Shown here: positions 12,000-55,398 of the stretch, one piece after another | How positions within the stretch are numbered: the stretch's first letter is position 1 | Layout of the letters: every line of letters starts with the position of its first letter | Assembly (NCBI GenBank): GCA_002269645.1 | Contig: NIVC01004205.1 | Span: 1 to 55,398 of the forward strand | Direction of reading: 5' to 3' | Origin: Macrostomum lignano | Lineage: Eukaryota | DNA length: 55,398 nucleotides | The notes under the pieces: model-generated | Database searches by the model: none | What the model was told of the DNA's origin: nothing | Seen by the model: only the letters and a program-made list of their open reading frames with translations | Program-made: the position numbers and the translations under genes

Positions 12000-13806
12000 T
12001 ACTATTCCACGATGGAACTGAGACGGGGTCAATTCAGTCTAGAAGTGATAAGCCTTAGCAGAACTGAGGCATACGCTGCTGATGCGTACAAAATCAAATT
12101 CAGTTCTTTTGACTCCAAACGTATAGCTAAATCCAAAAATTTCACAGAATCGTCGAGTTCATGACAGTGTCAGCCTCCAGTTTCTCTCCTTATGCTTCAT
12201 GCGGTAGCTCTGCGCTGCACGGAGCCTTTTTGTGAGGGATATAGTTGGTAGAGTGGAACTCGACTTTAGAAACGGGGACGGTGAAGAGACAGGCCTTGAG
12301 GGCGGGGACCAGCCAGGAGGAGTAGGTGCGTGCGCGCGTGTGCGATCGGGGGAGGCGGAGGAGGGAGAGGCCAGGACACGGCGGAGCTGCTGCAAAGCTT
12401 GGGGGAGAAGGTAGAGAGGAGGGGGGGTCTGGCCAGTTTGTTGGTACGCGAGAAGGCTAGAGGGGAGGGGGCAAGTGGAGAGAAAGAATGGGAAGGGACG
12501 GAGAGTGAGGCACCCTTTAAGCCAAGGGCACACTCGCTAAGACATACACACACACACCACACACACAAGCTGTTGTCGCGTGCATGTGCAGACGGGGGTG
12601 AGTGAGCGATGCCGTTTTTGGCTGGACAGTAGAAGAGGCAGAGTGCGCGCGTGCGCCCAATGTGGCTGCAAATTTTTGGCTAGGGAAGGCCATTTTTCAA
12701 GGGAAATGGGGCGGGCGCCTGCATGTGGGGGCCGGCGAGAGAAAGAGAAAGAGAGAGGGGGAGACAGAGAGGGCGTTCTGCTATCGTGTTGGTTGGCCCC
12801 TGGGTGAGGTTGGCACGGATTTTGTGCGCAAGCGCGCCGTGTGTGTGTATTAAACTTGGAACATGACTGTTCGCTGTTGGTTGGCACTGCGCGGCCCAAG
12901 TTCCCGTCCTCCTAGGAGACGGAGGTGGTTTTCTATGGGTCTCTCTATCCTGTGCCGATGCTAAGCTTTTGTGAACTGGACGCGCAGTCCGAATGAATGT
13001 ACTCACCGAGGAGGAAGAGTGACCCAATAACGGTTTGTATGGCGTTCAATCCGGGTGAGGCAAGGTGGAAACAGAATATAGTGAGAGGCAGAAAGAGTGC
13101 GGAAAGGGTCAGAACACTGGTCCCTCCTTTGGAGAAGTACACCCCTCGGCAGTACGCTTAACTTCCTGGGCGGGGGGGGGACCCTTGCGCTTCAGTTGGG
13201 GCGTTTCTCGGAATATGAGGGCGGCAGTTGTTCAGGAATGGAAGAAGGGTGGTGCGACGGAGGAAAAGAGAGGTGGAAAGAAAGGTGAGAGAGAGTATCG
13301 AGAGCGAGACAGAGCGGGGAGCATCTTTTCGCACCATTTCAGCTGGAATAAGAAAGGTTTATTTGGGAGTGCTCATAATACATGTAGTGACGCATTCTCT
13401 TTCTTTCCTTATTGTTTTGACCTAGCTCACTGGAAACTGGAAACTCCCTGGAAAGTGTTAGACCCTACTTCTCGCATTCTATAAGTACTATGAAGAATGG
13501 CTAGATGGTCTCATTAAGTGTCTGTTTGCACTTGAACTGTCACTAAAGCCACACCGCCAAACCTTTAACCAATTGGAGTAGTTTATACCAGATTTCACTT
13601 TTAGGCATTGAAGGAGCCTGAAATTTGTTAGAAGACTTTCCGCCAGCAGAATTGGGCTCGGAATAGGAGAGACGGAAAGAAGCGAATAGGTGAAGGAGAA
13701 CATGTTGGTTAGTAATGGATAGATAGTCTGTGCGCATGTTTTGAGCGTACACAGTCGGGTTGAGAGTAGTATGACAGAAAAAGAGAGAAAAGATCGACAG
13801 TGGCAC

Positions 13807-15174: not shown

Positions 15175-16991
15175 TGGCGCTGGTACATGCTCAGGAGTCA
15201 GTGCAATAGGTAGACATTCCTCACCTCTGGTTGTGGGGGACGATGTCGCTGAAGGCGGGTCATCAGATGTCGAACGCTTTCCTATTTATTATTTTTATAC
15301 AGTTTTCTAGATGTACTAAATGTACTTAATGTTGCAGAAGCAGGTTAAGAAATGGAACAGACTCTTGGCTTAATTTAGTACCTCTGGGATCTGTTTCAAC
15401 TCACGAAGACAAAACGATTTCGCAACTACTAAAAGGAGTCATGTTTCTTTTAAAATGTATTAATCTTTTATTTAGCAGAAAACTAATCTTTTTTGGAATA
15501 TGCATTATTTTTTAGAAGGTTGACTAATTTCATGATAGGCGATTATTTTAACTCTTTTTAGAAGGGGTGCCTTTTACTGCTAAATAGCGAAGGCCAGTGC
15601 AGTTGCAATTAATAAATGCATAGTGACTTTTTCAACCTTGAACCCTCAGCTCGGAGAGGCGGCCTAACATGCAGCCATTTTCTACCTCATTAGAGAACTT
15701 TGGGGCATGGCAATACCTTCGCTAAGTGCATTCTCCATTCGGTTGTAAAACAAAGTAGAGCCAAACTGCAATGGTGCCGGGTTTCTGCGGGTCAGAGAAC
15801 TGATTTTGCGGCTTCATGATCCTGACAGTTGGCAAGGATCTGAAAGGGAGCCACGTACAGAGTTTCATACTGCCTCTGGGGCGGAACTAATTAGCATTTA
15901 GGCAGCTCCCTCCTTGTTGCCTTGAATGAACTTTTTCTAGTGCCGGTGGGAAGGGGAAGTGGAAACGGTGACTATGGGATCACATAATGAGGAGACAATG
16001 TCTTGTCAGTGACGGGATAATGGCAACCAAACAGTGAGTGGCAGAAACTTTCTGTGTGAGTGAATTGAAACTGGCAGTGAATGAAAGGGACAAGGAGTGA
16101 CTCGAGAGTGACTGAACAGTGAAAAGGGGTAACTGGACTGGCGGACTACTAACCAAAGGGTGGCTGAAAGACAAGGTGTGACTAGGAGAGTGGCTGAGCT
16201 ACTGAGGTTTAAGATACGTGTCGGTCCTAGCAAGAATCGACGCAATACTCCATCAGACAAGATAAGTGTGAAACGTTCGCTTAACATTCGGGCTATTCTG
16301 CAGCCCTGCATACCCTGATCCACACAGCTTGTCAACAAGTACAGCATCCTGCGTTTCCCAATCTGTCTTGACTTACCGACGCGATAGACAAAGCACCCAT
16401 GCGTCTTACAGCGGCCTACAGGTGATTTACGCTCCAAAAAATTGCGCCTTTCTATCACCGAGTTCAGGAAGCTCTAGACAATGAATTCGGAGAGGTAACT
16501 TTAAGCCATTGAAACCACTTTTCTGATTCAAGCAGTAAAAACTTTTCACAAAAATTTCAAAAATCATTTTAAGAAACTTTTTTTTGAAAATAGATCACTA
16601 AAACTTTACGAGTTATGAATTTTTTTAAAGGTCTAATGAATTTATAGAACATTCTTTGTTAGTTTCGATGTTAATTCGATTCCATTGATGATGGACACGG
16701 TATCATGGCCGATGACATCACAGAAAACTTCACAATCATGCGCCGCGAAATTTGACGCAAAAAAGTTATCAATAGGACATCCCTAAGGCTGTAGTGCAAA
16801 ACAATTTTTATTTATACGGGAAAATCGAAAAACGAATGTTTGTTTCATGTTTGTGGTGCGACGGACACAGTACAATGAGTAGCACCATTTAAAATAATTG
16901 AATATCATTTATAGAAACAAAAATTTAGCTAATTCGTCACCATGATTACAACATACGAAATGTTCGGATCACGTCATCTCAGGTGAGTTAA

Positions 16992-17656
16992 TCCAATATA
17001 CTAAAAATCAAAACTATGTACCTACCTATCTATCTATCTATAGGAACCTTCGTTTAACTTGACTTTGCGTGGTCGGAATTTCGTGGGGTTTGCTGCATTC
17101 GATGCGTATTGATGGTGCGCTGGTACACAAAATTTTGCTAAGAAATTACTTTAATTTTTAGGGATTAAATATTCGAAAAACTCGATTTTTGCCCCGTTTT
17201 TTTAAGTTTAAACAGTTTTTTTCGATTGAGAAGCATTCTGACTGCCGATGGAATTGTATTGCATCAAAACTAAGTGCCAACTATAGCATTGGTTCTCTAC
17301 ACTCGCGTGGAGAGCTACAAGCGTTGAAAGGTTGCGCAACAAATTTTAGCTATTGAAATTGAGGGGCGGGTGTTGCTATTCAATTAGTCCTGGGCATTGG
17401 CTTGGTTGTTAATTTTAATGCATCAACTTGCAGGCCTCTCACTGTAGCTGGCGCTGAATGTACACCTTTATGAATTTGACTGCTTTAAAGCAGGAATATC
17501 AAACCGTTGTTTGTGCTTCGAGTTTTTCACTTTCAGAAGAGAGCCTTGTATTGCTGGAAAGAGCTTGAAACGCTGAGTTCGGGAATATAATTTCTTTGCT
17601 TAGATTCAAAAAATTAAAAGCACAGCATTAAAAAGAAGATTCCTATGAATTTTACT
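16992..17656 (+). mobile_element. Helitron unit H0 (5' end only, diverged)
   Basis: A|TCCAATATACTAAAAAT followed by (TATC)n and a GCTAAGAAATT..ATTAAATATTCGAAAAAC segment shared with the other units. No 3' hairpin-CTAG before the next 5' end. Confidence 0.6.
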
Positions 17657-18246
17657 TCCAATATACTAAAAATGGTCTGTCTGTGTCTATCTATCTATCT
17701 ATCTATCTATCTATGTGATCGATTAGAGAAAAAATGGCTGGACCGATTTTGTTCGAACTTGCACTGTTCGATCAGAAATTTTCCCGTGACGGTACATGCA
17801 TCGTGGCTAAGAAATTGCTCAATGCTAGAGGCATTAAATATTCGAAAAACATGCTTTTTTGCAAAGGTCAAGCAAACTTTTTGACTTGAAATGCATTGTA
17901 AGAATGCTAGAGAAAAAACTGACTGGTTGAATTCTGACTCTGAAATAGATTGCATCATAACTGAATTGTAACTCTGACTTGAATTGAAAATGCAGTGTGG
18001 AAGCCTAGCACCAGACTTGATTTAAATTGCGTAACCATATTGTTAACTGATACTGACTGACTGAGAAACTGATTATGTCATAACTGCTTCGTGTGATTTA
18101 CTCTATGCTTGGATTTTAAACTGTTGAATTATATATATATATGTGCAAAATTTGATAAATGCAGCGACGATGGTTCGAATTTTCATAGAATATAATTTTT
18201 TCAATTAAAGCTTTTCAACGTCAGGAAAACTAAAAGACTTTTTAAA

Positions 18247-21200
18247 AAGAAGCGTCATGTAAAAATCATAGAAGCGTCATATAAAAATCATAGATGCGTC
18301 ATTTAAAAAATCATAGAAGCATCGTATAAAAATCATAGAAGCGTCATGTAAACAATCATAGAAGCGTCATGTAAACAATCATAGAAGCGCCATGTAAAAA
18401 TCATAGAAGCGTCATGTAAACAATCATAGAAGCGTCATGTAAACAATCATAGAAGCGTCATGTCAAAATCATAGAAGCGTCATGTAAACAATCATAGAAG
18501 CGTCATGAAACAATCATAGAAGCGTCATGAAACAATCATAGAAGCGTCATGTAAACAATCATAGAAGCGTCATATAAACAATCATAGAAGCGTCATGTAA
18601 AAATCATAGAAGCGTCATGTAACCAATCATAGAAGCGTCATGAAACAATCATAGAAGCGTCATGTAAAAATCATAGAAGCGTCATGTAAACAATCATAGA
18701 AGCGTCATGTAAACAATCATAGAAGCGCCATGTAAAAATCATAAAAGCGACATGTAAAAATCATAGAAGCGTCATGTAAAATCATAGAATCGTCCTGCCA
18801 AAATCGTAGAAGCGTCATGTAAAAAATCCTTGAAGCGTCATGTAAACAATCATAGAAGCGTCATGAAACAATCATAGAAGCGTCATGTAAACAATCATAG
18901 AAGCGTCATGTAAACAATCCTAGAAGCGTCATGTAAAAAATCATAGAAGCGTCATGTAAACAATCATAGAAGCGCCAAGTAAAAATCATAAAAGCGTCAT
19001 GTAAACAATCATAGAAGCGTCATGTAAACAATCATAGAAGCGTCATGTAAACAATCATAGAAGCGTCATGTAAACAATCATAGAAGCGCCAAGTAAAAAT
19101 CATAAAAGCGTCATGTAAACAATCATAGAAGCGTCATGTAAACAATCATAGAAGCGTCATGTAAACAATCCTAGAAGCGTCATGTAAACAATCATAGAAG
19201 CGTCATGTAAACAATCCTAGAAGCGTCATGTAAACAATCATAGAAGCGTCATGTAAACAATCATAGAAGCGCCAAGTAAAAATCATAAAAGCGTCATGTA
19301 AACAATCATTCAAGCGTCATTTAAACAATCATAGAAGCGTCATGTAAACAATCATTCAAGCGTCATTTAAACAATCATAGAAGCGTCATGTAAACAAGCA
19401 TAGAAGAATGTAAACAATCATAGAAGCGTCATGTAAACAATCATTCAAGCGTCATTTAAACAATCATAGAAGCGTCATGTAAACAAGCATAGAAGCGTCA
19501 TGTAAAAATCATAGAAGCGTCATGTAAACAATCATAGAAGCGTCATGTAAACAATCATAGAAGCGTCATGTAAAAATCATAGAAGCGTCATGTAAACAAT
19601 CATAGAAGCGTCATGAAACAATCATAGAAGCGTCATGAAACAATCATAGAAGCGTCATGTAAACAATCATAGAAGCGTCATATAAACAATCATAGAAGCG
19701 TCATGTAAAAATCATAGAAGCGTCATGTAAAGAATCATAGAAGCGTCATGAAACAATCATAGAAGCGTCATGTAAAAATCATAGAAGCGTCATGTAAACA
19801 ATCATAGAAGCGTCATGTAAACAATCATAGAAGCGCCATGTAAAAATCATAAAAGCGACATGTAAAAATCATAGAAGCGTCATGTAAAATCATAGAATCG
19901 TCCTGCCAAAATCGTAGAAGCGTCATGTAAAAAATCCTTGAAGCGTCATGTAAACAATCATAGAAGCGTCATGAAACAATCATAGAAGCGTCATGTAAAC
20001 AATCATAGAAGCGTCATGTAAACAATCCTAGAAGCGTCATGTAAACAATCCTAGAAGCGTCATGTAAACAATCATAGAAGCGTCATGTAAACAATCCTAG
20101 AAGCGTCATGTAAACAATCATTCAAGCGTCATTTAAACAATCATAGAAGCGTCATGTAAACAATCATTCAAGCGTCATTTAAACAATCATAGAAGCGTCA
20201 TGTAAACAAGCATAGAAGAATGTAAACAATCATAGAAGCGTCATGTAAACAATCATTCAAGCGTCATTTAAACAATCATAGAAGCGTCATGTAAAAATCA
20301 TAGAAGCGTCATGTAAACAATCATAGAAGCGTCATGTCAAAATCATAGAAGCGTCATGTAAACAATCATAGAAGCGTCATGAAACAATCATAGAAGCGTC
20401 ATGTAAACAATCATAGAAGCGCCATGTAAACAATCATAGAAGCGTCATGTAAAAATCATAGAAGCGTCATGTAAACAATCATAGAAGCGTCATAAAACAA
20501 TCATAGAAACGTCATGTAAAAATCATAGAAGCGTCATGTAAACAATCATAGACGCGTCATGTAAACAATCATAGAAGCGTCATGTAAACAATCATAGAAG
20601 CGTCATGTAAACAATCATAGAAGCGCCATGTAAAAATCATAAAAGCGTCATGTAAACAATCATTCAAGCGTCATTTAAACAATCATAGAAGCGTCATGTA
20701 AACAAGCATAGAAGAATGTAAACAATCATAGAAGCGTCATGTAAAAATCATAGAAGCGTCATGAAACAATCATAGAAGCGTCATGTAAAAAATCATAAAA
20801 GCGTCATGTAAAAATCGTAGAAGCGTCATGTAAAAATCATAGAAGCGTCATGTAAAATCATAGAAGCGTCATGTAAAAATCATAGAAGCGTCATGTAAAA
20901 TCGTAGAATCGTCCAGCCAAAATCGTAGAAGCGTCATGTAAAAAATCATAGAAGCGTCATGTAAAAATCATAGAAGCGTCATGTAAAATCATAGAATCAT
21001 CCTGCCAAAATCGTAGAAGCGTCATGTAAAAAATCCTTGAAGCGTCATGTAAACAATCATAGAAGCGTCATGAAACAATCATAGAAGCGTCATGTAAACA
21101 ATCATAGAAGCGTCATGTAAACAATCCTAGAAGCGTTATGTAAACAATCCTAGAAGCGTCATGTAAACAATCATAGAAGCGTCATGTAAACAATCCTAGA

Positions 21201-22260
21201 AGCGTCATGAAACAATCATAGAAGCGTCATGTAAACAATCATAGAAGCGTCATGTAAACAATCCTAGAAGCGTTATGTAAACAATCCTAGAAGCGTCATG
21301 TAAACAATCATAGAAGCGTCATGTAAACAATCCTAGAAGCGTCATGTAAACAATCATAGAAGCGTCATGTAAACAATCATAGAAGCGCCATGTAAAAATC
21401 ATAGAAGCATCATGTAAACAATCATAGAAGCGTCATATAAAAATCATAGAAGCGTTATGTAAAAATGATAGAAGCGTCATATAAAAAATCATAGAAGGTC
21501 ATGTAAACAATCATAGAAGCGTCATATAAAAATCATAGAAGCGTCATGTAAACAATCATAGAAGCGTCATGAAACAATCATAGAAGCGTCATGTAAACAA
21601 TCATAGAAGCGTCATGAAACAATCATAGAAGCGTCATGTAAACAATCATAGAAGCGCCATGTAAAAAATCATAGAAGCGTCATGTAAACAATCATAGAAG
21701 CGTCATGTAAAAATCATAGAAGCGTCATATAAAAATCATAGATGCGTCATATAAAAATCATAGATGCGTCATGTAAACAATCATAGAAGCGTCATGTAAA
21801 CAATCATAGAAGCGTCATGTAAACAATCATAGAAGCGTCATGTAAAAAATCATAGAAGCGTCATGTAATGAATCATAGAAGCGTCATGTAAACAATCATA
21901 GAAGCGTCATGTAAACAATCATAGAAGCGTCATGTAAAAATCATAGAAGCGTCATGTAAAAATCATAGAAGCGTCATGTAAACAATCATAGAAGCGTCAT
22001 GTAAAAAATCGTAGAAGCGTCATTTAAAAATCATAGAAAGCGTTATTTAAAATAATCATAGAAGCGTCATGTAAACAATCAGAGAAGCGTCATGTAAACA
22101 ATCATAGAAGCGTCATGTAAAAAATCATAGAAGCGTCATGTAAACAATCATAGAAGCGTCAAGAAAAAATCATAGAAGCGTCATGTAAAAAAAGTCATAG
22201 AAGCGTCATGTTAAAATCATAAAAGCGTCATGAAAAAATCATAGAAGCCTCATTTAAAAA
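18247..22260. repeat. Satellite S1, 22-23 bp unit AATCATAGAAGCGTCATGTAAAC, roughly 175 copies
   Basis: Direct tandem repeats. A rare variant (TCCTGCCAAAATCG) recurs near 18791, 19899 and 20998. Confidence 0.97.
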
Positions 22261-23168
22261 CTAAGGAAAGTGTCATTTAAAAAATTAAGAAGCATCATGG
22301 TAGAATAAAAGAAGCGTCATGTCAGACATGAAGGGTGTCATGTAAAAATAAATGCAGCTATAATGCTGTGCTGGGGAGAAAAACTGAGACGTTAAGGCTC
22401 TCAGAGAATAACTGAGATTACGGGGGGGGTTGCTGAGATGTCAAAGCAAAAGTCAGAAGCTACTTCAAAGTTCATGTACTTTACTCAATTTTTTTATTAC
22501 ATTCTTTGTTGGCTCGCCACGGGGGGGGGTCGCTGATAGAAGAAGAGTCATGTAAAAAATAAAAGTAGCACTATGTATACATAAAAGAAAAGTCATGTCG
22601 AAGTTAAAAGATTCATTTGGGAATTGCTATGATGTCAAAGCTTGGAGGGAATCGTTACAGTGCTGTGATTCTTAAAGAAGGAATCACTAAAATGTCAAGG
22701 CTTAGGGGAGAAGAATTGCTGAGATTCAAGGCTTTAGGTTGGGTTAAAGTTAGGTTTAGGTCAGGTGTGGGTTGAGGGTTATATTTTATCGGGTTTCAAG
22801 GTTAACGGGGGATTTTTCAGATTTCAAGGTTTATGGAGGCCATCGCTGACATGTCAAGGCTTACGGGGGGAATAGCTGAGATGTCAAGGCTCACGGGGGT
22901 ATAAATGAGATTTCAAAGCTAAAGTCAGAAGCTACATGTAAACAATCATGTAAAGTTTATTGAAAACTTTTTATTACATTATTTGATGCCTCCTCAGGGG
23001 AGGGATCGCTGATAAAAAAAGCGTAATGTAAAAAATAAAAGAAGCTTCATGTCGAAGTTAAGAGATTCATTTGGGAATCCCTACGATGTCGAGGCTTGCA
23101 GGAAATCGCTATAATGCTGTAGCAGTGCTATAATGACTCTTAGAGAGAATTACTGAAATGTCAATGCT

Positions 23169-23230
23169 TTAGGGTTAGGTTAGGGTTAGGGTTAGGGTTA
23201 GGGTTAGGGTTAGGGTTAGGCTAGGGTTAG
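23169..23230 (+). repeat. Interstitial telomeric repeat, ~10 TTAGGG units
   Basis: TTAGGG TTAGG (TTAGGG)6 TTAGG CTAGGG TTAG, about 230 bp before the H1 3' end. Confidence 0.95.
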
Positions 23231-24752
23231 AAGGTTGACAGATATTTTTAGATTTCCAAGGCTTATTGGGGGCATTGCTGAGATGTCAAGGGGGGGAGTT
23301 GATATGTTAAAGCTTGTGGTGGGGAATTACTGACATGTCAAGGCTTACAAGGTTTGACAGGAGATTTTTTAAGATTTCAAGGATACATGTAGCTTATTAA
23401 AAAAACGTGTAGCGATTGCATTTCTTTGGCTCCCCAACGGGGGGCGTAGATTGCTAGTCCTATATACTAAAAATGAAATGTCTGTAACTAACTAGCTATG
23501 CGATAGATTTCAGAAAAAATGGCTCAACCGATTTTCTTCAAACTTGCACCATTTGATCAGAAATTTTCCTGGCACGGTACATGCATCTTGGCTAAGAAAT
23601 TGCTCAATGTTAAAGGGATTAAATATTCGAAAAACATGCTTTTTTGCAAAGGTCAAGCAAAATTTTCGACTTGAAATGCATTGTAAGAATGCTAGAGAAA
23701 AAACTGACTGGCTGAATTCCGATTGTGATAAAGATTGCATCACAACAAGTTGAAAACAGTGTCAAAGAAATGCACACACGACTTGAATGAAATTGCGTAA
23801 CCATATTGCCAACTTAAATTGAGACTGATTCTGGCTGACTGAGAAATTGATTATGTCATAACTTTTTACTCTAACTAACTTGCTGTAAGAATTGAATTAT
23901 AAGGGCCACAATTCATAGCCAAGATGCGAACAGACTGGAATGCTAATGTAGCGACCTGGGCTCGAATCTTAGTAGTGTAAAAAGATTTTTTTATCAAAAC
24001 ACCTTAAAAATACAAAACTGCTAAACATAATTGTTGTGTATGGACTTTTGGTTTAGCAAATGCACTAATGCTTCCCTTCTTTTGTATTCGGCATTGACTA
24101 TTAATTTTTTACCTTTATGTTAAGACAAAAATAATTAAATGTCCAACTGCGGCACTCTACTACAATATTGTTCCCTGTATTATTATATGCTACTATACGA
24201 GCGTACATGTAGTTGCGTCTCAAAATCATAAATTTTTGGTTGCTTTTGGACAAATATCTTCTTTTGCTTGAACTTTAACTTTAACTTTCCCTTTAACTTT
24301 ATAGTTCAAAATTAATTCAACAATAAACTGCATCTTTCTTCTGTGCCATTGTTAGTACATGAAAGTTGCTCTAGTGGTCGCTACAGAGTGCTACAGACTG
24401 AGTGAGTGCGCTATTTATTCCATGGTCAGCTCAGCTGACCATGTTCGGCAGGAAAGGAGCTGCAATTCTGCGCCTCACTGGCCATAGACTACCAATTTTT
24501 TTTCTTGTCACCTTCTATTCTATGGCTATGGTCAGCTCTGCTAGCCACCCGGCATCTAAGGGTTAAGAGCCGAAGGCTAACAGTATTACAAAGGGCAAAC
24601 AAGACGTGCGCCGGCTAGAGGCAAATAAAGCTTGTGAACAGCTCGTATTTTAAATAATGCTTCTTTGACTTGACTTTGATGTCAGATGGTAGCCTGGAGG
24701 CAATAGTCGGTATAGAAGCAGAAGAAGAGGACATAACAATAATAGAAGCGCA

Positions 24753-26100
24753 ATGTCAAACATAGAAGAGCCACCATGTCGAACATTAAAGAGCCAACAT
24801 TTCGAATATAAAAGAGTTACCATGTCAAACATAAAAGAGCCACCATGCCAAACATAAAATAAGCACTATGTCTGACATATACGTGACTCCATGTCAAAGA
24901 TTAAAAAGCCACCATGTCAAACATAGAAGAGCCACCATATCAAACCTAAACGAGCCACCACGTCTAATATTTAAGAGCCACCACGTCTAATATTTAAGAG
25001 CAACCATGTCAAACATCAAAAAGCCACTGGATAAAACATAAAAGAGTTACCATGTAGAACAAAAAACAGTCACGATGTCGAACATAAAAGAGCCACCATG
25101 TAGAATATTAAAGAGCCACCATGAAGAACATTTAAGAGCCACCATGTCAAACATTTAAGAGCCACCATGTCGAACATTAAAGAGCCACCATGTCAAACGT
25201 TAAAGAGCCACCATTTCGAACATTAAGGAGCCACCATGTCAAACATATATGTGACTTTATGTCAAACATTAAAGAGCCACCATTTCGAACATTAAAGAGC
25301 CACCGTGTCAGACATTAAAAAGCCACCATATCAAACATAAAAGAGCTACCATGTAGAACAAAAAACAGCCACGATGTTGAACATAGAAGAGCCACCATGT
25401 CAAACATTAAAGAGCCACCGTGTCAAACATAAAACAGCCACCATTTCGAAAATTAAAGAGCCACCATGTCAAACATTAAAGAGCCACCATGTCGAAAATT
25501 AAAGAGCCACCATGTCAAACATTAAAGAGCCACCATGTCAAACACAAAAGAGCCACCATGTCAAACATAGAAGAGACACCATGTAAAACATACACGTGAC
25601 TCCATGTAAAAAATTAAAAAGCCACCATGTCAAACATCAAAGAGCCACCATGTCAAAAATTAAAGAGTCACCATGTCAAACATTAAAGAGCCACCATGTC
25701 GAACATTAAAGAGCCACCATGTCAAAAATTAAAGAGCCACCATGTCTCGATCAAACATTAAAGAGCCACCATGTCAAACATAAAAGAGCCACCATGTCAA
25801 ACATAAAAGAGCCACCATGTCAAACATAAAAGAGCCACCATGTAAAGTATAAAAGAGCCACCTTGTCAAACATTAAAGAGCCATCATGTGAAACATATAC
25901 GTGACTCATTGACTCAATGTCAAACATTAAAGAGCCACCATGTCAAACATTAAAGAGCTATCATGTCAAACACAAAAGAGCTACCATGTCAAACATAGAA
26001 GAGCCACCATGTCAAACATTAAAGAGCTATCATGTCAAACACAAAAGAGCTACCATGTCAAACATAGAAGAGCTACCATGTCAAACATTAAAGAGCCACC
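24753..26100. repeat. Satellite S2, 23-bp unit ATGTCAAACATTAAAGAGCCACC
   Basis: Direct tandem repeats, roughly 55-60 copies. Confidence 0.95.
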
Positions 26101-26214
26101 TTTTTAAACAAAAAAGAGATCCCATTTCAAACATAAAAGAAGTGTCATGCCAAACAGAATGGAACCATTATAAAGCTAAGGAAATTGTTGCACTAGCTAC
26201 TTGTTCTCTGGTGG

Positions 26215-26945
26215 ATGCTTGCTATTTAAGGATTGATACTTGCTTACAGGGGGATGCTTGCTCTTGTGGGTGGAGGGTACTTGCTATCTGAGAGGGGGTT
26301 GCTAGATATCTATAAAGTATCTTTGTATCCAGGTTATGCTTGCTATCAGGGGTTGCTTGCTGTCTGGGGGATGCTTGCGATTTGGGGGATGCTTGCTATC
26401 TGTGGGATGCTTGCTATCTGGGGTCTGGGGGAATGCTTGCTATCTGGGGATGCTTGCTATCTGGGGTTGCGTGCTATCTGCGGGATGCTTGCTGTCTGGG
26501 GGATGCTTGCTATCTGGGGGATGCTTACTATCTGGGGTCTGGGGGAATGCTTGCTATCTAGGGATGCTTGCTATCTGGGGTTGCTTGCTATCGGGGGGAT
26601 GCTTGCTATCTGGGGGATGCTTGCTATCTGGGGTCTGTGGGAATGCTTGCTATCTGGGGTCTGGGGGAATGCTTGCTATCTGGGGATGCTTGCTATCTGG
26701 GGTTGCTTGCTATCGGGGGGATGCTTGCTATCTGGGGGATGCTTGCTATCTGCGGGATGCTTGCTGTCTGGGGGATGCTTATTATCTGGGGTCTGGGGGA
26801 ATGCTTGCTATCTGGAGATGCTTGCTATCTGGGGTTGCTTGCTATCGGGGGGATGCCTGCTACCTGGGGGATGCTTGCAGTCTGGGGGATGCTTGCTATT
26901 TGGGGATCGATGCTTGAATGCTGTCTGAGGATGCTTGCTGTCTTG
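26215..26945. repeat. G-rich satellite S3, 17-18 bp unit GGGGGATGCTTGCTATCT
   Basis: Direct tandem repeats with an interspersed GGGGTCT variant. Confidence 0.93.
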
Positions 26946-27610
26946 GGATGTTTTGTTTTTAGAGGGAATGTCTGTTGTTGTTTTTTGAAGGCTTTATTTC
27001 GCTGTCTATTTGTTATTTGTAAAGAACAAGGATTCTATCCAGATGTCCCCCATCGGGGGGCAAAGATTGCTAGTTATATACTCATTGTACGCTCTCCAAT
27101 ATCGCAAACCCCTATTTTATCGCAACTCCACAATTCAAGCCAGCGCCATTGAATTTAGATTTAGATTGCGTAATCATATTGGTGATTTTATTTGAAACTG
27201 ATACAGACTGGCTGTGAAATTTTGTCATAACTGCTTCGTGTGATTTACTCTGTGCGTGGAGTTTTGAAAGTGTTGAATTATGTAAGTGCTACAATTTATG
27301 TTATTAAAACAATGAGAGATAGCCTAAAGCTCGAAAGTTAAACAGACTGACCTGTTAATGCAGCGACGTGGGTTCGAATTTTTAAATTGTAGAAGTTTTT
27401 TATTAAAAAAATTAATAATTTAAATTTAATAAAGTTTAATTTTAAACTTTTTAGCTAAAGAAAACTAAAAAAACGTCAGGTAAATCAGGCAGAAGAGAAG
27501 CTACGAGTATTCATGTAGTATATTCAAATTTTTTTATTAAACTGAGATGCCAAGGCTAAGGGGAATTGCTGAGATATCAAGACGTGAGGGGAATTGCTGA
27601 GATGTCAACG

Positions 27611-28196
27611 CAGTGTTTTTTTTTTCGCTATTGATTAGTACCCGAATTGGGGTATCAAGCCTCTGAGTAGTACCCCATTTTGGAGGAGTAATACCCCATG
27701 AAATTTCTAATTTTGCCTCTGTAGTTTACTTGAATTCTTATAAAAATTGATTCTGGCGCAGTCAAATAACTTAATCAAGACTATATTTAGAGTTAAAACA
27801 CAGCTGCTAATGTTTGACTGCATTCTTGTGTCTTTCGTTGAAGGCTGAACAAGCTAGATTTCGAAATTTCAAGTAAATTAGATGGCGTTGCAGTATCGCA
27901 ATCTAATCTAAATCTAATTCCAATTAGATCAGTTTCCAATTCCAACCCTCTCTCACTTTTAGAGTTTTAGCCTGACAGTCTGACTCACCACACGAGTGGA
28001 TATACCTTAGTACAAAGACCCATACCAGCCCAGTCAGAATTTTAATTGAACAGCAAATTTTAGAAAAAAGCTTAACTTGTTTGAATTAAAGTCGAAAAAA
28101 TAGTACCCCATTCTGGGGTATTAATGGGCAAAATAGTACCCCAAATCAGTTGACTAATACCCCATGGGGTACTAATTGGGGTAAAAAAAAACCCTG
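27611..28196. mobile_element. hAT-like MITE nested in Helitron H3
   Basis: TIRs CAGTGTTTTTTTT / AAAAAAAAACCCTG, subterminal TAGTACCCC/TAATACCCC motifs in both orientations at both ends, flanks ATGTCAACG and ATGTCAAGA (imperfect ~8-bp TSD). Confidence 0.75.
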
Positions 28197-28249
28197 ATGT
28201 CAAGACTTACTGGGGGAATTACTGAGATATAAGGGCTTACTGAGAGAAT

Positions 28250-28920
28250 TACTGAGATGCCAAGGCTTAAGAGTGAATTGCTGAGATGTCAAGGCTTGGA
28301 GGGAATTGCTGAGATGTCAAGGCTTAAGAGTGAATTGCTGAGATGTCAAGGCTTGGAGGGAATTGCTGAGATGTCAAGGCTTAAGAGTGAATTGCTGAGA
28401 TGCCAAGGCTTAAGAGTGAATTGCTGAGATGTCAAGGCTTAAGAGTGAATTGCTGAGATGTCAAGGCTTAAGAGTGAATTGCTGAGATGCCAAGGCTTAA
28501 GAGTGAATTGCTGAGATGTCAAGGCTTTGAGGGAATTGCTGAGATGTCAAGGCTTAAGAGTGAATTGCTGAGATGTCAAGGCTTAAGAGTGAATTGCTGA
28601 GATGCCAAGGCTTGGAGGGAATTGCTGAGATGTCAAGGCTTAAGAGTGAATAGCTGAGATGCCAAGGCTTAAGAGTGAATTGCTGAGATGTCAAGGCTTA
28701 AGAGTGAATTGCTGAGATGCCAAGGCTTAAGAGTGAATTGCTGAGATGCCAAGGCTTAAGAGTGAATTGCTGAGATGTCAAGGCTTGGAGGGAATTGTTG
28801 AGATGTCAAGGCTTAAGAGTGAATTGCTGAGATGTCAAGGCTTGGAGGGAATTGCTGAGATGTCAAGGCTTAAGAGTGAATTGCTGAGATGTCAAATCTT
28901 GGAGGGAATTGCTGAGATGT
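28250..28920. repeat. Satellite S4, 28-29 bp unit GCTGAGATGTCAAGGCTTAAGAGTGAATT
   Basis: Direct tandem repeats. The GCTGAGATGTCAAGG core is also dispersed in the 3' blocks of H1, H4 and H5. Confidence 0.93.
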
Positions 28921-28949
28921 TAAGTCTTGGGGAGGAATTCTATGGATTT

Positions 28950-29930
28950 GGGAATCTTTGAACGAGAGATGCTTCTAATGGATATCTCGAGGAGATGAGG
29001 GGATTCTTTGGCCAAGAATTCTATTCATGGGCGGATTATTTGGATGAGAGATTCTTTGGATTCCTTGAATGGGGGATTCTGTTGATGGGGATTATTTGGA
29101 AGTGGATTTTTTGAACGGGGGTTTTTTAGATGAGGGTATTCTTTGGCCAATTATTCTTTTGATGGGAGAATCAATGGATAATGTGGATGGAGATTCTGTG
29201 GATGGGGATTCTTTGGACGTGGATTATTTGCATGAGGATTCTTTGGAGGGAGATTCTTTAGATAGGAATGGATGGGGATGGATAGGAGGATTCTTTGGAT
29301 ACGGATAAATAGGGGCATTTTTTCGCTAGGGATGGATGGGGGATTCTTTGGATATGGATGGGTGGGGGATTCTTGGGATATGGATGGATGGGGGGTTTCT
29401 TTGGATATGGATGGGTGGGGGATTCTTTCGATGGGAATTCTGTGAATGAGAGATTCTTTAAATAGGGATTCTTTTGAAGGGGATTCTTTGCATGTGAGAT
29501 GTTATGGATGGGCAATGGATTGGGTGGGAAATTCTTCAGATAGGAAAATTCCTTGAATGGGGAATTCTTTGGATCCTGGATTCTATTGATAGGGGTTCTT
29601 TGGATGGGGGATTTTTTGATATGGATGGAGGTCGGGGATTTTTTGGATAGGGATGGATAGGGGGATTCTTCGGATCGGGGATTCTATCGATGGGGGTTCT
29701 TTGGATGGGGATTCTCTGCATGTAAGATTCTATGGATGGGCAATTCTTCAGATAGGAGAATTCCTTGAATGGGGAATTCTTCGGATCGGTGATTCTATCG
29801 ATGGGAGGTTTTTTGTTTTTTTGGATGGCGGATTCTTTGCATGTGAGATTCTTTGTATCGTGGATTCTATGGGTGGTGTATTCTTTGGATGAGGGATTCT
29901 TTGTATGGGAAATTCAGTTGGGTGAAATTT
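28950..29930. repeat. Degenerate G/T-rich repeat S5 (GGGGATTCTTTGGAT-like)
   Basis: Imperfect ~15-bp periodicity. A related copy lies at 30600-31400. Confidence 0.8.
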
Positions 29931-30599
29931 TATTGCGTGGGAAAACTGTGGCTGGAGTTTGGACGGAAAGCCCCAACGGGAGTTGGAATTGGCTAGCTGA
30001 GGAAATTGCTTCATTAATCTTGCTGGGGGTACTTTCTATCAGGGGTTGCTTGCTATCGGAAGGACGCTTGCTCTTGGGGATGCTTGCTCGGAAGAGAATT
30101 TTAAGATGTCAAGATTTACGAGGGGAATTATTGAGATACATGTATAAAATCTTACCTTGGGGAATTAATGACATGTGAAGGCTTAAGAGGGACTTGCTGA
30201 GGTGTCAAGTCTTGTTGGGGAATTGCTGAGATGCCAAGGCTTAAGAGGGAGTTCCTGAGATTTCAAGACTTGGGAAGGAGAATTACTCAGATGTCAAGGC
30301 TTAGGGGAATTTCTGAGACGTCAAGGCTTGTGGGGGGAATCGCTGAGATGTCAAGGCTTGTGGGGGGAATTTGTTGAGGTGTGAAGGCTTAAAAAGGAAT
30401 TGCTGAGATATGAAGGCTTACTGGGAGAATTACTAAGATATCAAGGCTTGGGGAGGGGAATTACTGAGATGTCAAGGCTTTGGACGGGGAGAAATTGGTA
30501 ACATGTCAAGGTTTGCGCCGGAATTGCTTAGATGTCAATGCTTGGGGAAAATTTCTGAGGTGTCGAGGCTTGGGGGAATTGCTGAGATGTTAAGTCTTG

Positions 30600-31400
30600 G
30601 TGGAATTCTATGGATTGATGATTCTTTGGATGAGGGATGCTTCTAATGGATAAATTTGGATAGGTGATTCATTGGGCAATTTCTTCGGAGGGGCATTGTT
30701 TCGATGGAGGGTTTTTTGAATGGGGGATTTTTTAGATGTATGATTCTTTAGATGGGGGTTATTTGAACGGGGGTTCTTTAGATGAGGGGATTCTGGGATT
30801 CTTTGGCCAATTATTCTTTTGATGTGGGATTATTTTAGGATGTGAATTCTTTGGAGGGGGGATTTTTCGGAGGAGCAATTTTTTGGATATGGATGGTTGA
30901 GGGGATTATTTAGATAGGAATGGATGGGGAAATTCTTTGGATAGGGATGAATTGGAGGATTCTTGGGATAGGGATGGATGGGCGATTCTTTAGATAGGGA
31001 TGGGTGGGGGATTCTTTGGATAGAGGGTTTCTGTGGATGAGGGATTTCTTGAATAAGGGATTCATTGGACGGGAAATTCTTCAGATGGGAGGATTCCTTC
31101 AATGGGGAATTCTTCGGATCGGGGATTCTATCAATGGGATGGGATGGGGATGGGACGGGAAGGATTGGTATTCTTTGCATGTGAGATTCTATGGATGGGC
31201 GACTCATTAAATAGGGAATTCTACAGATAGAGGATTCCTTGAATGGGGAATTCTTCGGATCGGGGATTCTGTCGATGGGGGGTTCTTTGTATGGGGATTC
31301 TTTGGATGAGGGTTTTTTGCATGTGGGATTATTTGCATCAGGGATTTTATGGATGAGAGATTCTTCGGATGAGGGGTTCAGTTGGGTGAATTTCTTTTGC
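30600..31400. repeat. Second S5 block (duplicate of 28950-29930)
   Basis: Both blocks start with GAGATGTTAAGTCTTGG..GGAATTCTATGGATT and end in the same hairpin-CTAG. Confidence 0.8.
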
Positions 31401-32082
31401 GTGGGAAAACTTTGGTAGGAGTTCTGACGGAAAGCCCCAACGGGGGTTGGAATTGGCTAGTCCTATATACTAAAAATGAAAATCTTGCTTGTTTGTTTGT
31501 TTGTACGCAATCGATTAGAGAAAAAATGGCTGGACCGATTTTCTTCGAACTTGCACTGTTCGATCAGAAATTTTCCTGGGACGGTACATGCATCTTGGCT
31601 AAGAAATTGCTCCATGTTAAAGCGATTAAATATTCGAAAAACATGCTTTTTTGCAAAGGTCAAGCAAACTTTTCGACTTGAAATGCATTGTAAGAATGCT
31701 AGAGAAAAAACTGACTGGTTGAATTCTGATTCTGAAATGGATTACATCATAACTGAATTGTAACTCCGACTTGAATTGCGTCACAGTATTGAAAATGCAG
31801 TGTGGAAGCGTAGCACCAGACGTGATTTAGATTGCGCAACCATATTGTTAACTGATACTAACTGACTGAGAAATTGATTATGTAATAACTGCCTCGTGTG
31901 ATTTACTCTATGCTTGGAGTTTTGAAACTTATAATTATAAGTGCTAAAATTCATATTATCAAAACGATGAGAGCTAGCCTAGAGGTAAACAGACTGAACT
32001 GCTAAATGCAGAAACGATGGTTCGAATTTTTAGAGAGTAGAGTTTTTTAATTAAAGCTTTTTAACACCAAGAAAACTAAAAA

Positions 32083-33275
32083 AATCATAGAAGCGTCATG
32101 TAAAAAATCATAGAAGCGTCATGTAAAAAATCGTGGAAGTGTCATGTAAAAAATCGTGGAAGCATCATGTAAAAAGCATAGAAGTGTCATGTAAAAAATC
32201 ATAGAAGCGTCATGTAAACAATCATAGAAGCGTCATGTAAAAAATCGTAGAAGCGTCATGTAAAAAATCATAGAAGCGTCATGCAAACAATCATAGAAGC
32301 GTCATGTAAAAAATCATAGAAGCATCGTGTAAACAATCATAGAAGCGTCATGTAAAAAATCGTAAGAGCGTAGTATAAAAATCATAAAAGCGTCATTTAA
32401 AAAATCATAGAGGCGTCATATAAAAACCAAAAAAACGTCATTTAAAAAATCATAGAAGCGTCATGTAAACAATCATAGAAGCGTCATGTAAACAATCATA
32501 GAAGCGTCATGTAAACAATCATAGAAGCGTCCTGCAGATATCGTAGAAGCGTCATGAAATAATCATAGAAGCGTCATGTAAAAAGCATAGAAGCGTCATG
32601 TAAAAAATCATGGAAGCGTCATGTAAAAATAATAGTAGCGTCATGTAAAAATCATAGAAGCGTCATGAAAAAATCATAGAAGCGTCATGAAAAAAACATA
32701 GGAGCGTCATGAAAAAATCATAGAAACGTCATGTAAAAATCATAGAATCGTCATATAAAAAGCATAGAAGCGTCATGTAAACAATCATAGAAGCGTCATA
32801 TAAAAAGCATAGAAGCGTCATATAAACAATCACAGAAGCGTCATGAAAAAATCATGGAAGCTTCATGTAAAAATCATAGAAGTGTCATGTAAAAAATTAT
32901 AAAAGTGTCATGTAAAAAATCATGGAAGCGTCATGTAAAAATCATAGAAGCGTCATGAAAAAATCATAGAAGTGTCATGTAAAAAATCATGGAAGCGTCA
33001 TGTAAAAAATCATAGAAGCGTCATGTAAAAATCATAGGAGCGTCATGAAAAAATCATAGAAGCATCATGTAAAAATCATAGAAGCGTCCTGCAGAAATCG
33101 TAGAAGCATCATGTAAACAATCATAGAAGCTTCATGTAAACAATCATCGAAGCGTCATGAAATAATCATAGAAGCGTCATGTAAAAAGCACAGAAGCGTC
33201 ATGTAAAAAGCATAGAAGCGTCATGTAAACAATCATAGAAGCGTCATGAAAAAATCATAGAAGCCTCATTTAAAA
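32083..33275. repeat. Satellite S1, second array (roughly 50 copies, more diverged)
   Basis: Same 22-23 bp consensus as 18247-22260. Confidence 0.95.
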
Positions 33276-34147
33276 ACTAATGAAAGCGTCATTTAAAAAA
33301 TTAAGAAGCATCATGGAAGAATAAAAGAAGTGTAATGTAAAAATCAAAAGAAGCGTCATGTCAGACATGAAGGATGTCATGTAAAAATGAAATGCAGCTA
33401 TAATGCTGTGCTGGGAAGAAAAACTGAGACATAAAGGCTCTCAGAGAATAACTGAGATTACGAGGGGGGGGGGTTGTTTCTGGGATCTCAAAGCAAAAGT
33501 CACAAGCTACTTCAAAGTTCATGTACTTTACTCAATTTTTTATTGCATTCTTTGTTGGCTCGCCATTGGGGGGGGTGCTGATAGAAGAAGAGTCATGTAA
33601 AAAATAAAAGTAGCACTATGTATACATAAAAGACAAGTCATGTCGAAGTTAAAAGATTCATTTGGGAATTGCTACGATGTCAAAGCTTGGTGGAAATCGT
33701 TATAGTGCTGTGATTCTTAAAGAAGGAATCACTAAAATGTCAAGGCTTAGGGGAGAAGAATTGCTGAGATTTCAAGGCTTTAGGTTGGGTTAAAGTTAGG
33801 TTTAGGTCAGGTGTGGGTTGAGGGTTATATTTTATCGGGTTTCAAGGTTAACAGTGGATTTTTTAGATTTCAAGGTTTATGGGGCCATCGCTGACATGTC
33901 AAGGCTTACGGACGGGGGGGAATAGCTGAGATGTCAAGGCTCACGGGGGTATAAATGAGATTTCAAGGCTAAAGTCAGAAGCTACATGTAGTTTATTGAA
34001 AACTTTTTATTACATTATTTGATGCCTCCTCAGGCGAGGGATCGCTGATAAAAAAAGCGTTATGTAAAAAATAAAAGAAGCTTATCGCTATAATGCTGTA
34101 GTAGTGCTATAATGACTCTTAGAGAGAATTACTGAAATTTCAATGCT

Positions 34148-34192
34148 TTAGGGTTAGGTTAGGGTTAGGGTTAGGGTTAGGGTTAGGGTTAG
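34148..34192 (+). repeat. Interstitial telomeric repeat, ~7 TTAGGG units
   Basis: TTAGGG TTAGG (TTAGGG)5 TTAG at the position homologous to 23169-23230. Confidence 0.95.
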
Positions 34193-34451
34193 AAGGTTGA
34201 CAGATATTTTTAGATTTCCAAGGCTTATTGGGGGCATTGCTGAGATGTCAAGGGGGGAAGTTGATATGTTAAAGCTGGGGGGGGGGAATTACTGACATGT
34301 CAAGGCTTACAAGGTTTGACAGGAGATTTTTTAAGATTTCAAGGATGCATGTAGCTTATTAAAAAAACGTGTATAGCATTTCTTTGGCTCCCCAACGGGG
34401 GGGCGTAGATTGCTAGTAATGAACTATAGTTGGAAGTTTGAAATTTATGTG

Positions 34452-34719
34452 CCAGCGATCCAGGCTCGATTTCAAGTGCATTCGCATTCATTTTGGGTTA
34501 AACTGGAATCTCGGCTTGGCTCTGCTCGTGCAATTACGAGCTAAGGGTCTTTAGGGCCAACTCCCAAAGAGACAGTGAAGTGTACATGCCCAACGATAAA
34601 TAAAGCTAGGGCCGTGCTGTACACTCCTGTGTGAGTGTGTGCCTGTGCGTATGACTGCTTACGTATCCGCGCGCTTGTGTGCCTGCTCAGGGGAGTCGGA
34701 GGAATGGGCAGTAATGCCT
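34452..34719 (+). mobile_element. Dispersed repeat, copy 1 of a putative tRNA-derived SINE
   Basis: CCAGCG..CAGGCTCGATT.CAAGTGCA..GGAATCTCG.CTTGGCTCTGCTC.TGCAATTA and GCTTGTGTGCCTGCTCAGGGGAGTCGG.GGAATGGGCAGTAA are shared with 42577-42766. Confidence 0.65.
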
Positions 34720-36763
34720 CTCTGTAGTTGTGCGACAATGTCGCTTAAAGTGCGCCATGGTGCACACATGCTAGCAAGCGGTTTGCAAGAATACGAGCGC
34801 CTATCAGGCAGGCAAGGGAGAAAGATAGAAAAGTGAGGTAGCTAAGGCAAAATATCGGACGCAGGGGATATCCGATTGCAACGAACACTCCCCATGCATT
34901 CCGTTTCAAAGAGGTGCAAAATCGCCAACCTCAGTTTCGTACCATTTCTAATTATCGAGCGAGGATAAAAAAGTCTGGCAATTTTCCTCTGATCCTAATT
35001 CCTAATTCCCCTATCTAAAACGGGCATTTCTCCAAATCATCCCTCTCGTGCCAACTTCCCGCGGGTTCCTGCTTAATACGCGTCAACGGGCCGCCAATGG
35101 CCACTCGGCTGTTTGGAATCCAATCCACCCCTTCACCGCCCTACCTGGGCCCGCTGTTAGCGGAACTCCCTGCGACCAAATGCTACCTGAGCCCCAGGCT
35201 CCCGGCCCTCTTATCTAGACCGCGCCGATGCTGACAGGGCCAGGGGAAGGACAGCAATTTTCAGAAATTTCGCTCACCAAATTCTTCTTCTAGAAGGCAA
35301 ACTTTGCGGTGGTTTTTCGATTTCTCTGATCGGCCTCTCTTCTGCTCTCCCCAGAGACTGAGAGCTCGAGAAGGGAGGGACGGAGAATAATCAGAAGCAT
35401 AGCAACCTTTTCATTCTAGCAGTTCCTTGCTAATAGTTGCCGCTATAAGAAGCGTTGAATTTCTTTTCATCGGAGAGAAATTGAAGATTCTTGGAAAGCA
35501 GAAATTTTTCTGGCTCGATTTCATCTGCTTTTTAGGTAAGGTTCGTTAAGATTATTGAAAATTGTGCTCCGATTCCATTAGTGTCCAGGTGGAAATTGAC
35601 ACCTAAACACTTTTTTTGCTCTTGTTAAGTTTTTTAAACTTAGCCATAGTCTAGCTCGCAGTAAAGCATAGCAATGTCTGATGCCAAATCAGATCAAATC
35701 AGGACAAAAAATTAGTCGCTGCAACAATAAGGGACCTACGGTATTTTGGATGAGCCCCCCTTTGATTCCGACATAGCTATTGTCACTTTTGTCAGAATCA
35801 GGCTAATCCCGAACCGATTTCGCACCGAGCCGCTATGAACTTTATCCAACCCGGAGGAATGTGACATTTTCTCACTGGCAGCGACCTCGCCGATTGTGGC
35901 ATCCTTATTGCAGAACAGCATTGCAACTAACCAAAGAATTAAGCACTTCCCGCTCTTTCGCTGCAGTGTCCAACCTCTTTATCAGGCAGGCCTGTCGCTT
36001 TAGGCAGCAGGCCAAATCCAAGTCGTAAAATGGGCCTCGCCGTTTCACCTCTCGCAGGCTTTTGTCGTAGAACTAGCCCCAGTGCAATGTCGAAATGTCG
36101 CTGTAAACTGCAACTGAAGCTGCAGGGGGCACTCACTGGCTCCCATCTCCCTATTACTTTTCCTGTCCGTTTTATTCACTGATGAGCCGGCGGCTTTAAA
36201 CTGCAGCAGAAGACGGCGGTACCTTTATTTTTGTTGCGTTAAATTGTTGCTATAGCGGTATCACCCTGTATGCACTAACAAAATGCTACGCCTTGGCACC
36301 CGATCGCTTGTGGCATTCCACTTCGGACAGGATAGAGAGGGTGTCAGAGCGAGAGGCTGGGCACCCCTCATCCCTGGGCTAGCTTCATTTTTTATCTTCG
36401 CGCGAGGTATGCGATGTTGGTTAAAGACATGCGTTCTCCACCACTCAGCCTATTCTATGTTGCTATGGGCTAGGGATCGTCTGATTGGGGCCAGTGCGCA
36501 GGTGAATAAATGGAATACCTGGAAGTTCCAGTTCTGATGCATCTTCATTTATACTCTAGCTGGCTAGTTAGACCCTGGTCATCGAACCTCACCGTCACAC
36601 ACCCCCAAAAAACACAGATACTTGCTTTTTATTACACTCAGGAAGTCGGCTACAACAGAATTCCTTGGATTTGAAGGAAGAACTACACTAAAACAACAAT
36701 ACGCCTGTTCTAGCATAGCGCCTCAGTATAAATCCGCTTTTGTTTACGCTTCTTGCCTTGCAG

Positions 36764-55398
<18,635 letters not shown>

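Follow-up and report, generated by a model that had tools for sequence, protein, structure and literature searches.

A head-to-tail stack of putative canonical-type Helitrons in one of three homeologous loci of Macrostomum lignano

How does a head-to-tail series of different mobile elements come to lie between two genes in one copy of a locus and in neither of its two closely related copies? The question is raised by contig NIVC01004205.1 of the flatworm Macrostomum lignano (assembly GCA_002269645.1), the 55,398 bp of which are referred to here as the window, and by a block of 17,425 bp within it (16992-34416). An earlier reading of the letters (the original prediction) regarded this block as a train of non-autonomous Helitrons, joined head to tail, that had grown in place by successive insertions. 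The train is borne out by the present analysis; its growth in place seems less likely. On balance, the block is probably a six-piece composite of one modular canonical-type non-autonomous family, which was built beforehand and arrived in one step, most likely through one rolling-circle transposition event. New aspects are the host, how many pieces are stacked and how heterogeneous they are, their satellite cargo, and the all-or-nothing difference between subgenomes.

Ends, joints, and interiors of the pieces

Five Helitron 5' ends (16992, 17657, 23458, 31461, and a degenerate one at 27074) and five hairpin-CTAG 3' ends (23457, 27073, 29996, 31460, and 34416) are present in the block, all on the + strand, and they delimit six pieces, here named U0, U1, U2, U3a, U3b, and U4. 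The family signature consists of TCC(A/T)ATATACT at the 5' end and of a hairpin followed by GATTGCTAG at the 3' end, and TCC and CTAG are where homology between units sets in and breaks off, respectively. The 5' motif TCC(A/T)ATATACTAAAAAT was matched four times against 0.13 expected, and the hairpin-CTAG pattern four times on the + strand (ends at 23457, 27073, 31460, and 34416) against 0.00 expected. At two junctions, 23457/23458 and 31460/31461, a 3' end is fused exactly to a 5' end as CTAG|TCCTATATACT, as had been predicted; the 15-mer CTAGTCCTATATACT occurs exactly twice in the window (23454-23468 and 31457-31471), with 0.10 occurrences expected and none of 100 shuffles reaching two.

The remaining joints deviate from this pattern. 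TCC starts the 5' ends at 16992, 17657, 23458, and 31461, the exceptions being 27074, which starts with TT, and the piece at 29997, which has no 5' end. The junction at 27073/27074 reads CTAG|TTATATACT, that is, the 5' motif without its CC, and it had been rightly described as a degenerate version of the other two. Two further ends, the 5' end at 17657 and the 3' end at 29996, had been missed, and the layout first proposed was therefore incomplete. Before the 5' end at 17657 the sequence is TTTTACT, hairpin and CTAG both being absent, and the joint reads ACT|TCC; the preceding 40 nt have a folding energy of only -1.1 kcal/mol (z +0.33), no better than shuffled sequence. The fifth terminator, GCCCCAACGGGAGTTGGAATTGGCTAG at 29956-29996, was found by a profile search built from the known ends, and it is followed by CTGAGG rather than by a 5' end, so that what had been read as a third unit consists of two pieces. 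It is identical to the end at 31460 in 85 of 100 positions, and the similarity stops exactly at CTAG.

Between the hairpins and the 3' terminus lie 12-14 nt, and the folding energies range from -6.2 to -6.9 kcal/mol; U0 has no hairpin. Taken as 40-mers on their own, the hairpins surpass shuffled sequence only modestly (z -1.5 to -2.2), and it is their position and their recurrence, rather than the folding energy, that speak for them. Three hairpin variants had been predicted, which is roughly right: the 3' ends fall into three classes, two of which have a common C4-5/G4-6 stem and the third of which favours a CCAAC/GTTGG stem. No inverted repeats beyond chance were found in U1-U4, where the longest reverse-complement match between the 5' and 3' ends is 7 nt and is equalled in 48-67 of 100 shuffles. 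In U0 alone there is a 12-nt inverted pair with one mismatch, ATAGGAACCTTC at 17040-17051 and GAAGATTCCTAT at 17635-17646, which was reached in 1 of 100 shuffles. This pair brackets most of U0 and does not lie at the positions expected for subterminal inverted repeats; it may be due to chance or to a small nested element.

Canonical Helitrons are defined by a 5' TC, a 3' CTRR with a hairpin approximately 11 nt upstream, an A/T target, and the lack of inverted repeats (PMC4067079, PMC11417382). The 5' TC start and the 3' CTRR with a GC-rich hairpin of this type (HLE1) are present in the block, and terminal inverted repeats are absent. There is no sign of coding capacity, as no Pfam match was obtained for the ten open reading frames (ORFs) inside the block and no RepHel domain was detected in the window ORFs that were scanned; an Rfam scan and a tRNA scan of the whole window gave no matches either. 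Judging from the sequence, it is very likely that the block is a stack of canonical-type (HLE1) non-autonomous Helitrons, which agrees with the original description.

Helentron/HINE elements (HLE2) were considered and rejected because two defining features are missing: the 11-15-bp subterminal inverted repeats, none of which were found in U1-U4, and the T/T target, since the block is flanked by A and T. The likeness to HINE, DINE-1, and Cg_HINE (PMC4067079, PMC7492417) is in layout only: a microsatellite close to the 5' end is followed by a variable spacer, a central tandem array of fixed orientation, and a 3' palindrome; those elements likewise disperse short satellite arrays across the genome. 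Unlike them, the present units have TC...CTAG ends with a hairpin 12-14 nt from the terminus, and the block as a whole lies at A|T instead of T|T.

The plan of the pieces is a 5' TC end, a microsatellite, a left region, satellite-like arrays, a right region, a GC hairpin, and CTAG. Tandem arrays with units of 16-29 bp make up 57% of the block. U0 (16992-17656) is a 5'-only piece; its 5' end TCCAATATACTAAAAATC was recognised by the left-terminal-sequence (LTS) profile at E 9.5e-55, and it contains (CTAY)n at about 17021-17043 and a conserved left block to about 17190, followed by unrelated sequence. U1 (17657-23457), a complete non-autonomous unit, starts with TCCAATATACTAAAAATG and contains (CTAT)n at 17686-17715, a 23-bp array of 180 copies at 18248-22322, and a right part with degenerate 29/30-bp repeats; its hairpin lies at 23429-23445 and its CTAG at 23454-23457. 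U2 (23458-27073), also complete, starts with TCCTATATACTAAAAATG, and a different 23-bp array of 50-60 copies (24753-26140) and an 18-bp array (26336-26905) precede the hairpin CCCCCATCGGGGG at 27047-27059 and CTAG at 27070-27073. U3a (27074-29996) has the defective 5' end lacking TC and the 3' end of the third class; a 29-bp array (28196-28928) and 16/26-bp arrays of GGATGGGG (29184-29909) lie between them. U3b (29997-31460), which begins at the junction CTAG|CTGAGG, is composed of 18-bp-like repeats (30023-30088), a 29-bp array (30159-30607), and 16-33-bp arrays (30878-31379), and it ends with CTAG at 31457-31460. U4 (31461-34416) is a complete unit related to U1; it starts with TCCTATATACTAAAAATG and contains (TTTG)n at 31489-31504, a 23-bp array of 57 copies at 32079-33361, a hairpin at 34387-34404, and CTAG at 34413-34416.

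Over their left approximately 220 nt, U0, U1, U2, and U4 can be aligned with one another, starting at the first T of TCC, and a short microsatellite is found 25-45 nt inside the 5' end of each. At the right ends only the last approximately 30 nt are common, except within the pairs U1/U4 and U3a/U3b. U1 and U4 are 84.5-86.6% identical across the left part, the array, and the right part; for the left parts only, the identity is 80.5% between U1 and U2 and 77% between U2 and U4. The left part of U3a is homologous to that of U1 and U4 only from 27158, at 75%, and U3a and U3b are 66-72% identical over the arrays and the right part. Overall, the units differ from one another by 13-34%, and these comparisons support the earlier statement that neighbouring interiors differ and that the block is not a simple concatemer. 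A degenerate version of the 29-bp unit of U3a and U3b also occurs in the right parts of U1 and U4; therefore, the family is modular. TTAGGG runs occur in the right parts of U1 (23169-23230, 10.7 copies) and U4 (34148-34192, 7.7 copies), about 230-290 bp before the 3' end, and therefore this subfamily carries interstitial TTAGGG arrays around.

Relatives outside M. lignano were sought with both ends. The 17-nt 5' end returned 140 loci in metagenome, viral, and prokaryote genomes, with BLAST matches of only 19-34 nt, as expected by chance; the 3' end returned no loci in the prokaryote genomes, which were the only ones searched. A protein database search with the ORF that spans the 31460/31461 junction gave no candidate copies. 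No description of Helitrons in M. lignano was found in literature searches.

Empty homeologous sites and the time of arrival

The M. lignano sequence compared in this study consists of three loci: the window and two homeologous contigs, NIVC01005213.1 (L001) and the 641-kb NIVC01000382.1 (L002). L001 9810-14960 aligns with window 16990-11833 (99.0%) and L001 7175-9809 with window 37053-34417 (98.5%), while L002 18069-22796 aligns with window 17000-12337 and L002 15410-18080 with window 37053-34417 (96.7%). The left host flank at 16930-16990 and the right host flank at 34417-37053 (both + strand) are common to the two empty sites. Both homeologs lack the whole block, with borders exactly at 16990/16991 and 34417. 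Since what both lack is precisely 16992-34416, the outer borders are confirmed independently of the motifs, and the A and T first noted as outer flanks (GAGTTAA|TCC on the left and CTAG|TAATG on the right) are backed by two empty homeologs.

In a three-way alignment of 7.2 kb of flanking sequence, the substitutions amount to 1.0% between the window and L001, 1.65% between the window and L002, and 1.64% between L001 and L002. Among approximately 7,200 aligned sites, 35 changes are private to the window (about 0.49%) and 36 to L001, and 82 set L002 apart from both. Three subgenomes (S, L1, and L2) have been reported in M. lignano, with a single-nucleotide divergence of 1.4-2.4% and with differences that are mostly large indels (PMC10733133); the three homeologous copies fit this description. 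Because the block is absent from both homeologs at low flank divergence, it was gained recently in the lineage of the window, within a divergence of roughly 0.5%.

The point of insertion differs slightly among the three loci. With the flanks joined, the window reads GAGTTAA|TAATGAAC, L001 reads GAGTT-ATAATGAAC (i.e. GAGTTATAATGAAC), and L002 reads GAGTT---AATGAAC (i.e. GAGTTAATGAAC). The window thus has one A more than L001, its closest empty site, which the three-homeolog alignment places at 16991 (+ strand) in the 5' junction, and TAA more than L002. The extra A or TAA may stem from slippage in the TAATAA tract, from a filler base, from an error in a homopolymer, or from something connected with transposition. 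Insertion between A and T without a target-site duplication had been predicted; the borders A|TCC and CTAG|T and the lack of a conventional duplication at the outer borders agree with it, and the extra A or TAA does not. The comparison with empty homeologs tests the A/T site at the outer borders of the stack, not at each unit.

When the window is compared with L002 (GAGT-TAA-TGAAC), TAA appears on both sides of the block, as would be expected for a cut-and-paste element of PIF/Harbinger type with a 3-bp TAA target duplication. However, no terminal or subterminal inverted repeats accompany it, TC...hairpin...CTAG ends occur five times within the block, the closest homeolog L001 already reads TATAA and leaves one A unexplained, and the site is a slippage-prone TAATAA tract. 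A non-Helitron origin of this kind is very improbable. A piggyBac element with a TTAA target was rejected as well, since inverted repeats are lacking, the flank on the right reads G|TAA, and TATAA is present at this position in L001 already.

The same comparison bears on a loss from L001, in which the block would have been present in the common ancestor of the window and L001 and later excised or deleted, with the TA that distinguishes L001 from L002 as a footprint. L001 does equal L002 plus TA exactly at the site, and variable TA repeats have been reported after Helitron excision in maize (Li and Dooner, as cited in PMC10095026). However, the more distant L002 is also without the block, so that a single insertion in the window lineage is more parsimonious; an A|T site with (TA)n derived from L002 predicts GAGTTAATATGAAC, and GAGTTATAATGAAC is observed; and no precedent was found for the excision of 17 kb in one piece. 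Little credence can be given to such a loss. As an observation in its own right, an indel of TA/TAA type distinguishes all three homeologs exactly at the insertion point (L001 about 9805-9815, L002 about 18075-18085), and the TA of L001 recalls the reported excision footprints, with positions that do not fit.

Assembly of the stack

Head-to-tail stacking of Helitrons and the A|TC retargeting mechanism are already known from maize and bats. Du et al. (2008) described two different maize Helitrons joined as CTAG|TC and proposed insertion into the dinucleotide made up of a host A and an element T (PMC2267711); the retargeting idea put forward for the present locus had therefore been published. 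Applied to this site, the model suggests that a first Helitron inserted between host A and T and that the train then grew leftwards, the left-most unit being the youngest. It accounts for two joints that are exactly CTAG|TCC and a third that is CTAG|T, for the single orientation of all units, for a host A kept at the far left only, and for neighbours that are different members of the family. For two maize Helitrons, presence/absence data provide a precedent (PMC2267711), and maize Helitrons have been reported to prefer insertion near or in other Helitrons (PMC3288121).

Retargeting of this kind can explain the junctions 23457/23458 and 31460/31461, and perhaps 27073/27074, but it offers no route to the CTAG|CT junction at 29996/29997 or to a piece without a 5' end. 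Moreover, the insertion of U0 would need no recognisable terminator and that of U3a would need TT instead of TC; as a sole mechanism, growth in place is at odds with the CTAG|CT joint, the ACT|TCC joint, and the TT start alike. It would also require four to five independent hits on the same nucleotide within approximately 0.5% divergence, while the approximately 38 kb around received none. With the end profiles, neither terminus was found again in the other approximately 38 kb of the window or in the 38 kb from L001 and L002, and therefore four to five independent hits on one nucleotide would need strong targeting. Overall, serial stacking at the present site seems unlikely.

The arrival of a ready-made composite is the origin that we consider probable, if by a modest degree of confidence. 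U3a and U3b, as duplicates that are only 66-72% alike, are far older than the arrival of the block; therefore, at least part of the train was assembled beforehand. U1 and U4, at 84.5-86.6% identity, likewise predate the arrival. U0 (no 3' end), U3b (no 5' end), and U3a (TT) could neither move by themselves nor be products of A|TC insertion. At least U3a and U3b came to the site as a ready-made composite, and U0 and U1 probably did so too. One possible scheme suggests that the composite was built earlier at another genomic place in two steps: 1) canonical insertions into the A|T at which a host A meets a resident 5' T would have produced the CTAG|TC joints, and 2) terminator bypass or truncation would have produced the 5'-only piece, the 5'-less piece, and the CTAG|CT joint. 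Subsequently, a RepHel transposase acting in trans would nick the left-most 5' end at 16992 and peel off the + strand, and copying would pass four internal terminators and stop at the last hairpin-CTAG, at 34416. Copying an existing train in one step is favoured because it explains everything with fewer steps.

Several points weigh against this explanation. Passing four apparently intact terminators at once is unlikely if one transposase recognises all of them. The two joints that are exactly CTAG|TC are what A|TC retargeting predicts, and they are equally possible at the present site. The point of insertion is not perfectly clean, owing to the ambiguity of 1-3 nt described above, any donor train would have to lie outside the three loci compared, and the internal order of the pieces, including a 4-kb array of 23-bp repeats, is taken from a PacBio/Canu contig alone.

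The last point raises the question of whether the order or number of the units could be an assembly artefact, caused by long satellite arrays, shared ends, error-prone PacBio reads, and three near-identical subgenomes. The amount of tandem array in the block, including 4.1 kb of 23-bp repeats, would favour misassembly; the assembly was made with Canu on PacBio reads and polished with Pilon (PMC5730564), and scaffolds that are chimeric between subgenomes account for 36% of the assembly length (PMC10733133). However, the syntenic flanks anchor both outer borders, base-precise junctions between dissimilar interiors are not expected from mis-joined repeats, and the shared ends, at only about 30-230 bp, are short in comparison with PacBio reads. 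An artefact is thus considered improbable.

If a pre-built train did move as a whole, heterogeneous stacks in general could be mobile super-elements, in which the transposase starts at the first 5' end, skips the terminators of other subfamilies, and copies the whole train; this extension is tentative, and its being correct is rather less probable than not. As a variant, the 5' junction of a resident relative may be a preferred integration site for the transposase (homing).

The skipping of terminators has an experimental counterpart in Helraiser, where the 3' hairpin is bypassed and transposition ends downstream (Grabundzija et al. 2016, PMC4778049). The step invoked for a one-step movement of the stack would be analogous, with a skippable 3' hairpin terminator and intervening sequence carried along; unlike what is proposed for the flatworm, the experiments on Helraiser demonstrated bypass only in single elements whose terminators had been deleted or weakened, not for serial intact ones.

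The closest parallels to the stack are the adjacent and multi-terminus Helitrons of maize (PMC2267711, PMC3288121), the latter of which constitute 28.7% of helA elements (PMC3288121). In both species, different members are joined as CTAG|TC with a G/T joint replacing A/T, presence or absence varies between genomes, and extra internal 5' or 3' ends occur. Unlike the maize stacks, which consist of two elements and carry gene fragments, the flatworm stack has six pieces and carries satellite arrays; it is also all-or-nothing, whereas an intermediate carrying a single element was seen among the maize lines. Tandem Helitron arrays in which the inner copies are 3'-truncated have been described in the bat Myotis lucifugus and in plant centromeres (Pritham and Feschotte 2007; Xiong et al. 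2016, as cited in PMC7492417, PMC4067079, PMC5876387), and these citing papers ascribe them to rolling-circle replication with a bypassed terminator. As far as they are described there, these arrays share perfect head-to-tail junctions with the flatworm block, but they repeat the same element, whereas neighbouring flatworm units differ in interior and terminator class. Therefore, the formation of a concatemer from a single template does not explain the block.

The locus documents canonical-type satellite-carrying Helitrons in a flatworm model. One Helitron-mediated event, or a very fast series of them, can enlarge a single subgenome of a recent polyploid by 17 kb, over half of which is tandem repeats, and the locus is one concrete source of the large indels that are the main difference reported among the M. 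lignano subgenomes (PMC10733133). A heterogeneous stack that is present as a whole or not at all makes serial insertion and en-bloc movement testable against each other within one genome. If the super-element reading is true, a train copied in one step would seed a 17-kb repeat island between genes.

Genes and repeats around the block

The flanks contain metazoan ORFs for a TET/JBP oxygenase (9207-12032, minus strand), an ASC channel fragment, an F-box protein, and titin/twitchin-like Ig/FN3 exons. A 648-aa ubiquitin-like ORF at 40443-42392 (minus strand) is 100% identical to BOX15_Mlig026511g2 in a protein homology search. Judged from the gene calls on both homeologous contigs, the TET gene and the ubiquitin-like gene bracket the block.

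At 16980-16988, 3 nt 5' of the insertion point, the sequence CAG|GTGAGT resembles a consensus splice donor; it is kept in L002 and reads CAGATGAGT in L001, and the gene calls of the homeologous contigs include none at this place. Just to the right of the train, 34445-34536 and 34634-34719 recur near 42570-42766 at 84-88% identity, and these segments represent an unrelated dispersed repeat that adjoins the insertion site.

A 15-bp satellite, GAGTTGGTAGCTTCT, occupies 37059-38881 with approximately 120 copies in the window versus only about 500 bp in L001 (6503-6996), so that the length of this array differs strongly between subgenomes. A second window-only segment of approximately 3.8 kb lies at 44400-48460, of which roughly 44500-48360 is missing from L001 and L002. 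It contains an element of approximately 3.4 kb with a reverse-transcriptase ORF at 46284-47015, which has a weak RVT_1 match; its best relative in the protein database is 45% identical, and no M. lignano matches were returned. The element is nested in a (TC)n array, with about 320 bp of (TC)n on either side (44413-44721 and 48134-48457), and it may represent a retroelement with (TC)n microsatellites as its target. This simple repeat is also found elsewhere in the locus, since the (GA)n-rich segment at 13762-13877 matches the reverse complement of the (TC)n at 44.4 and 48.1-48.5 kb.

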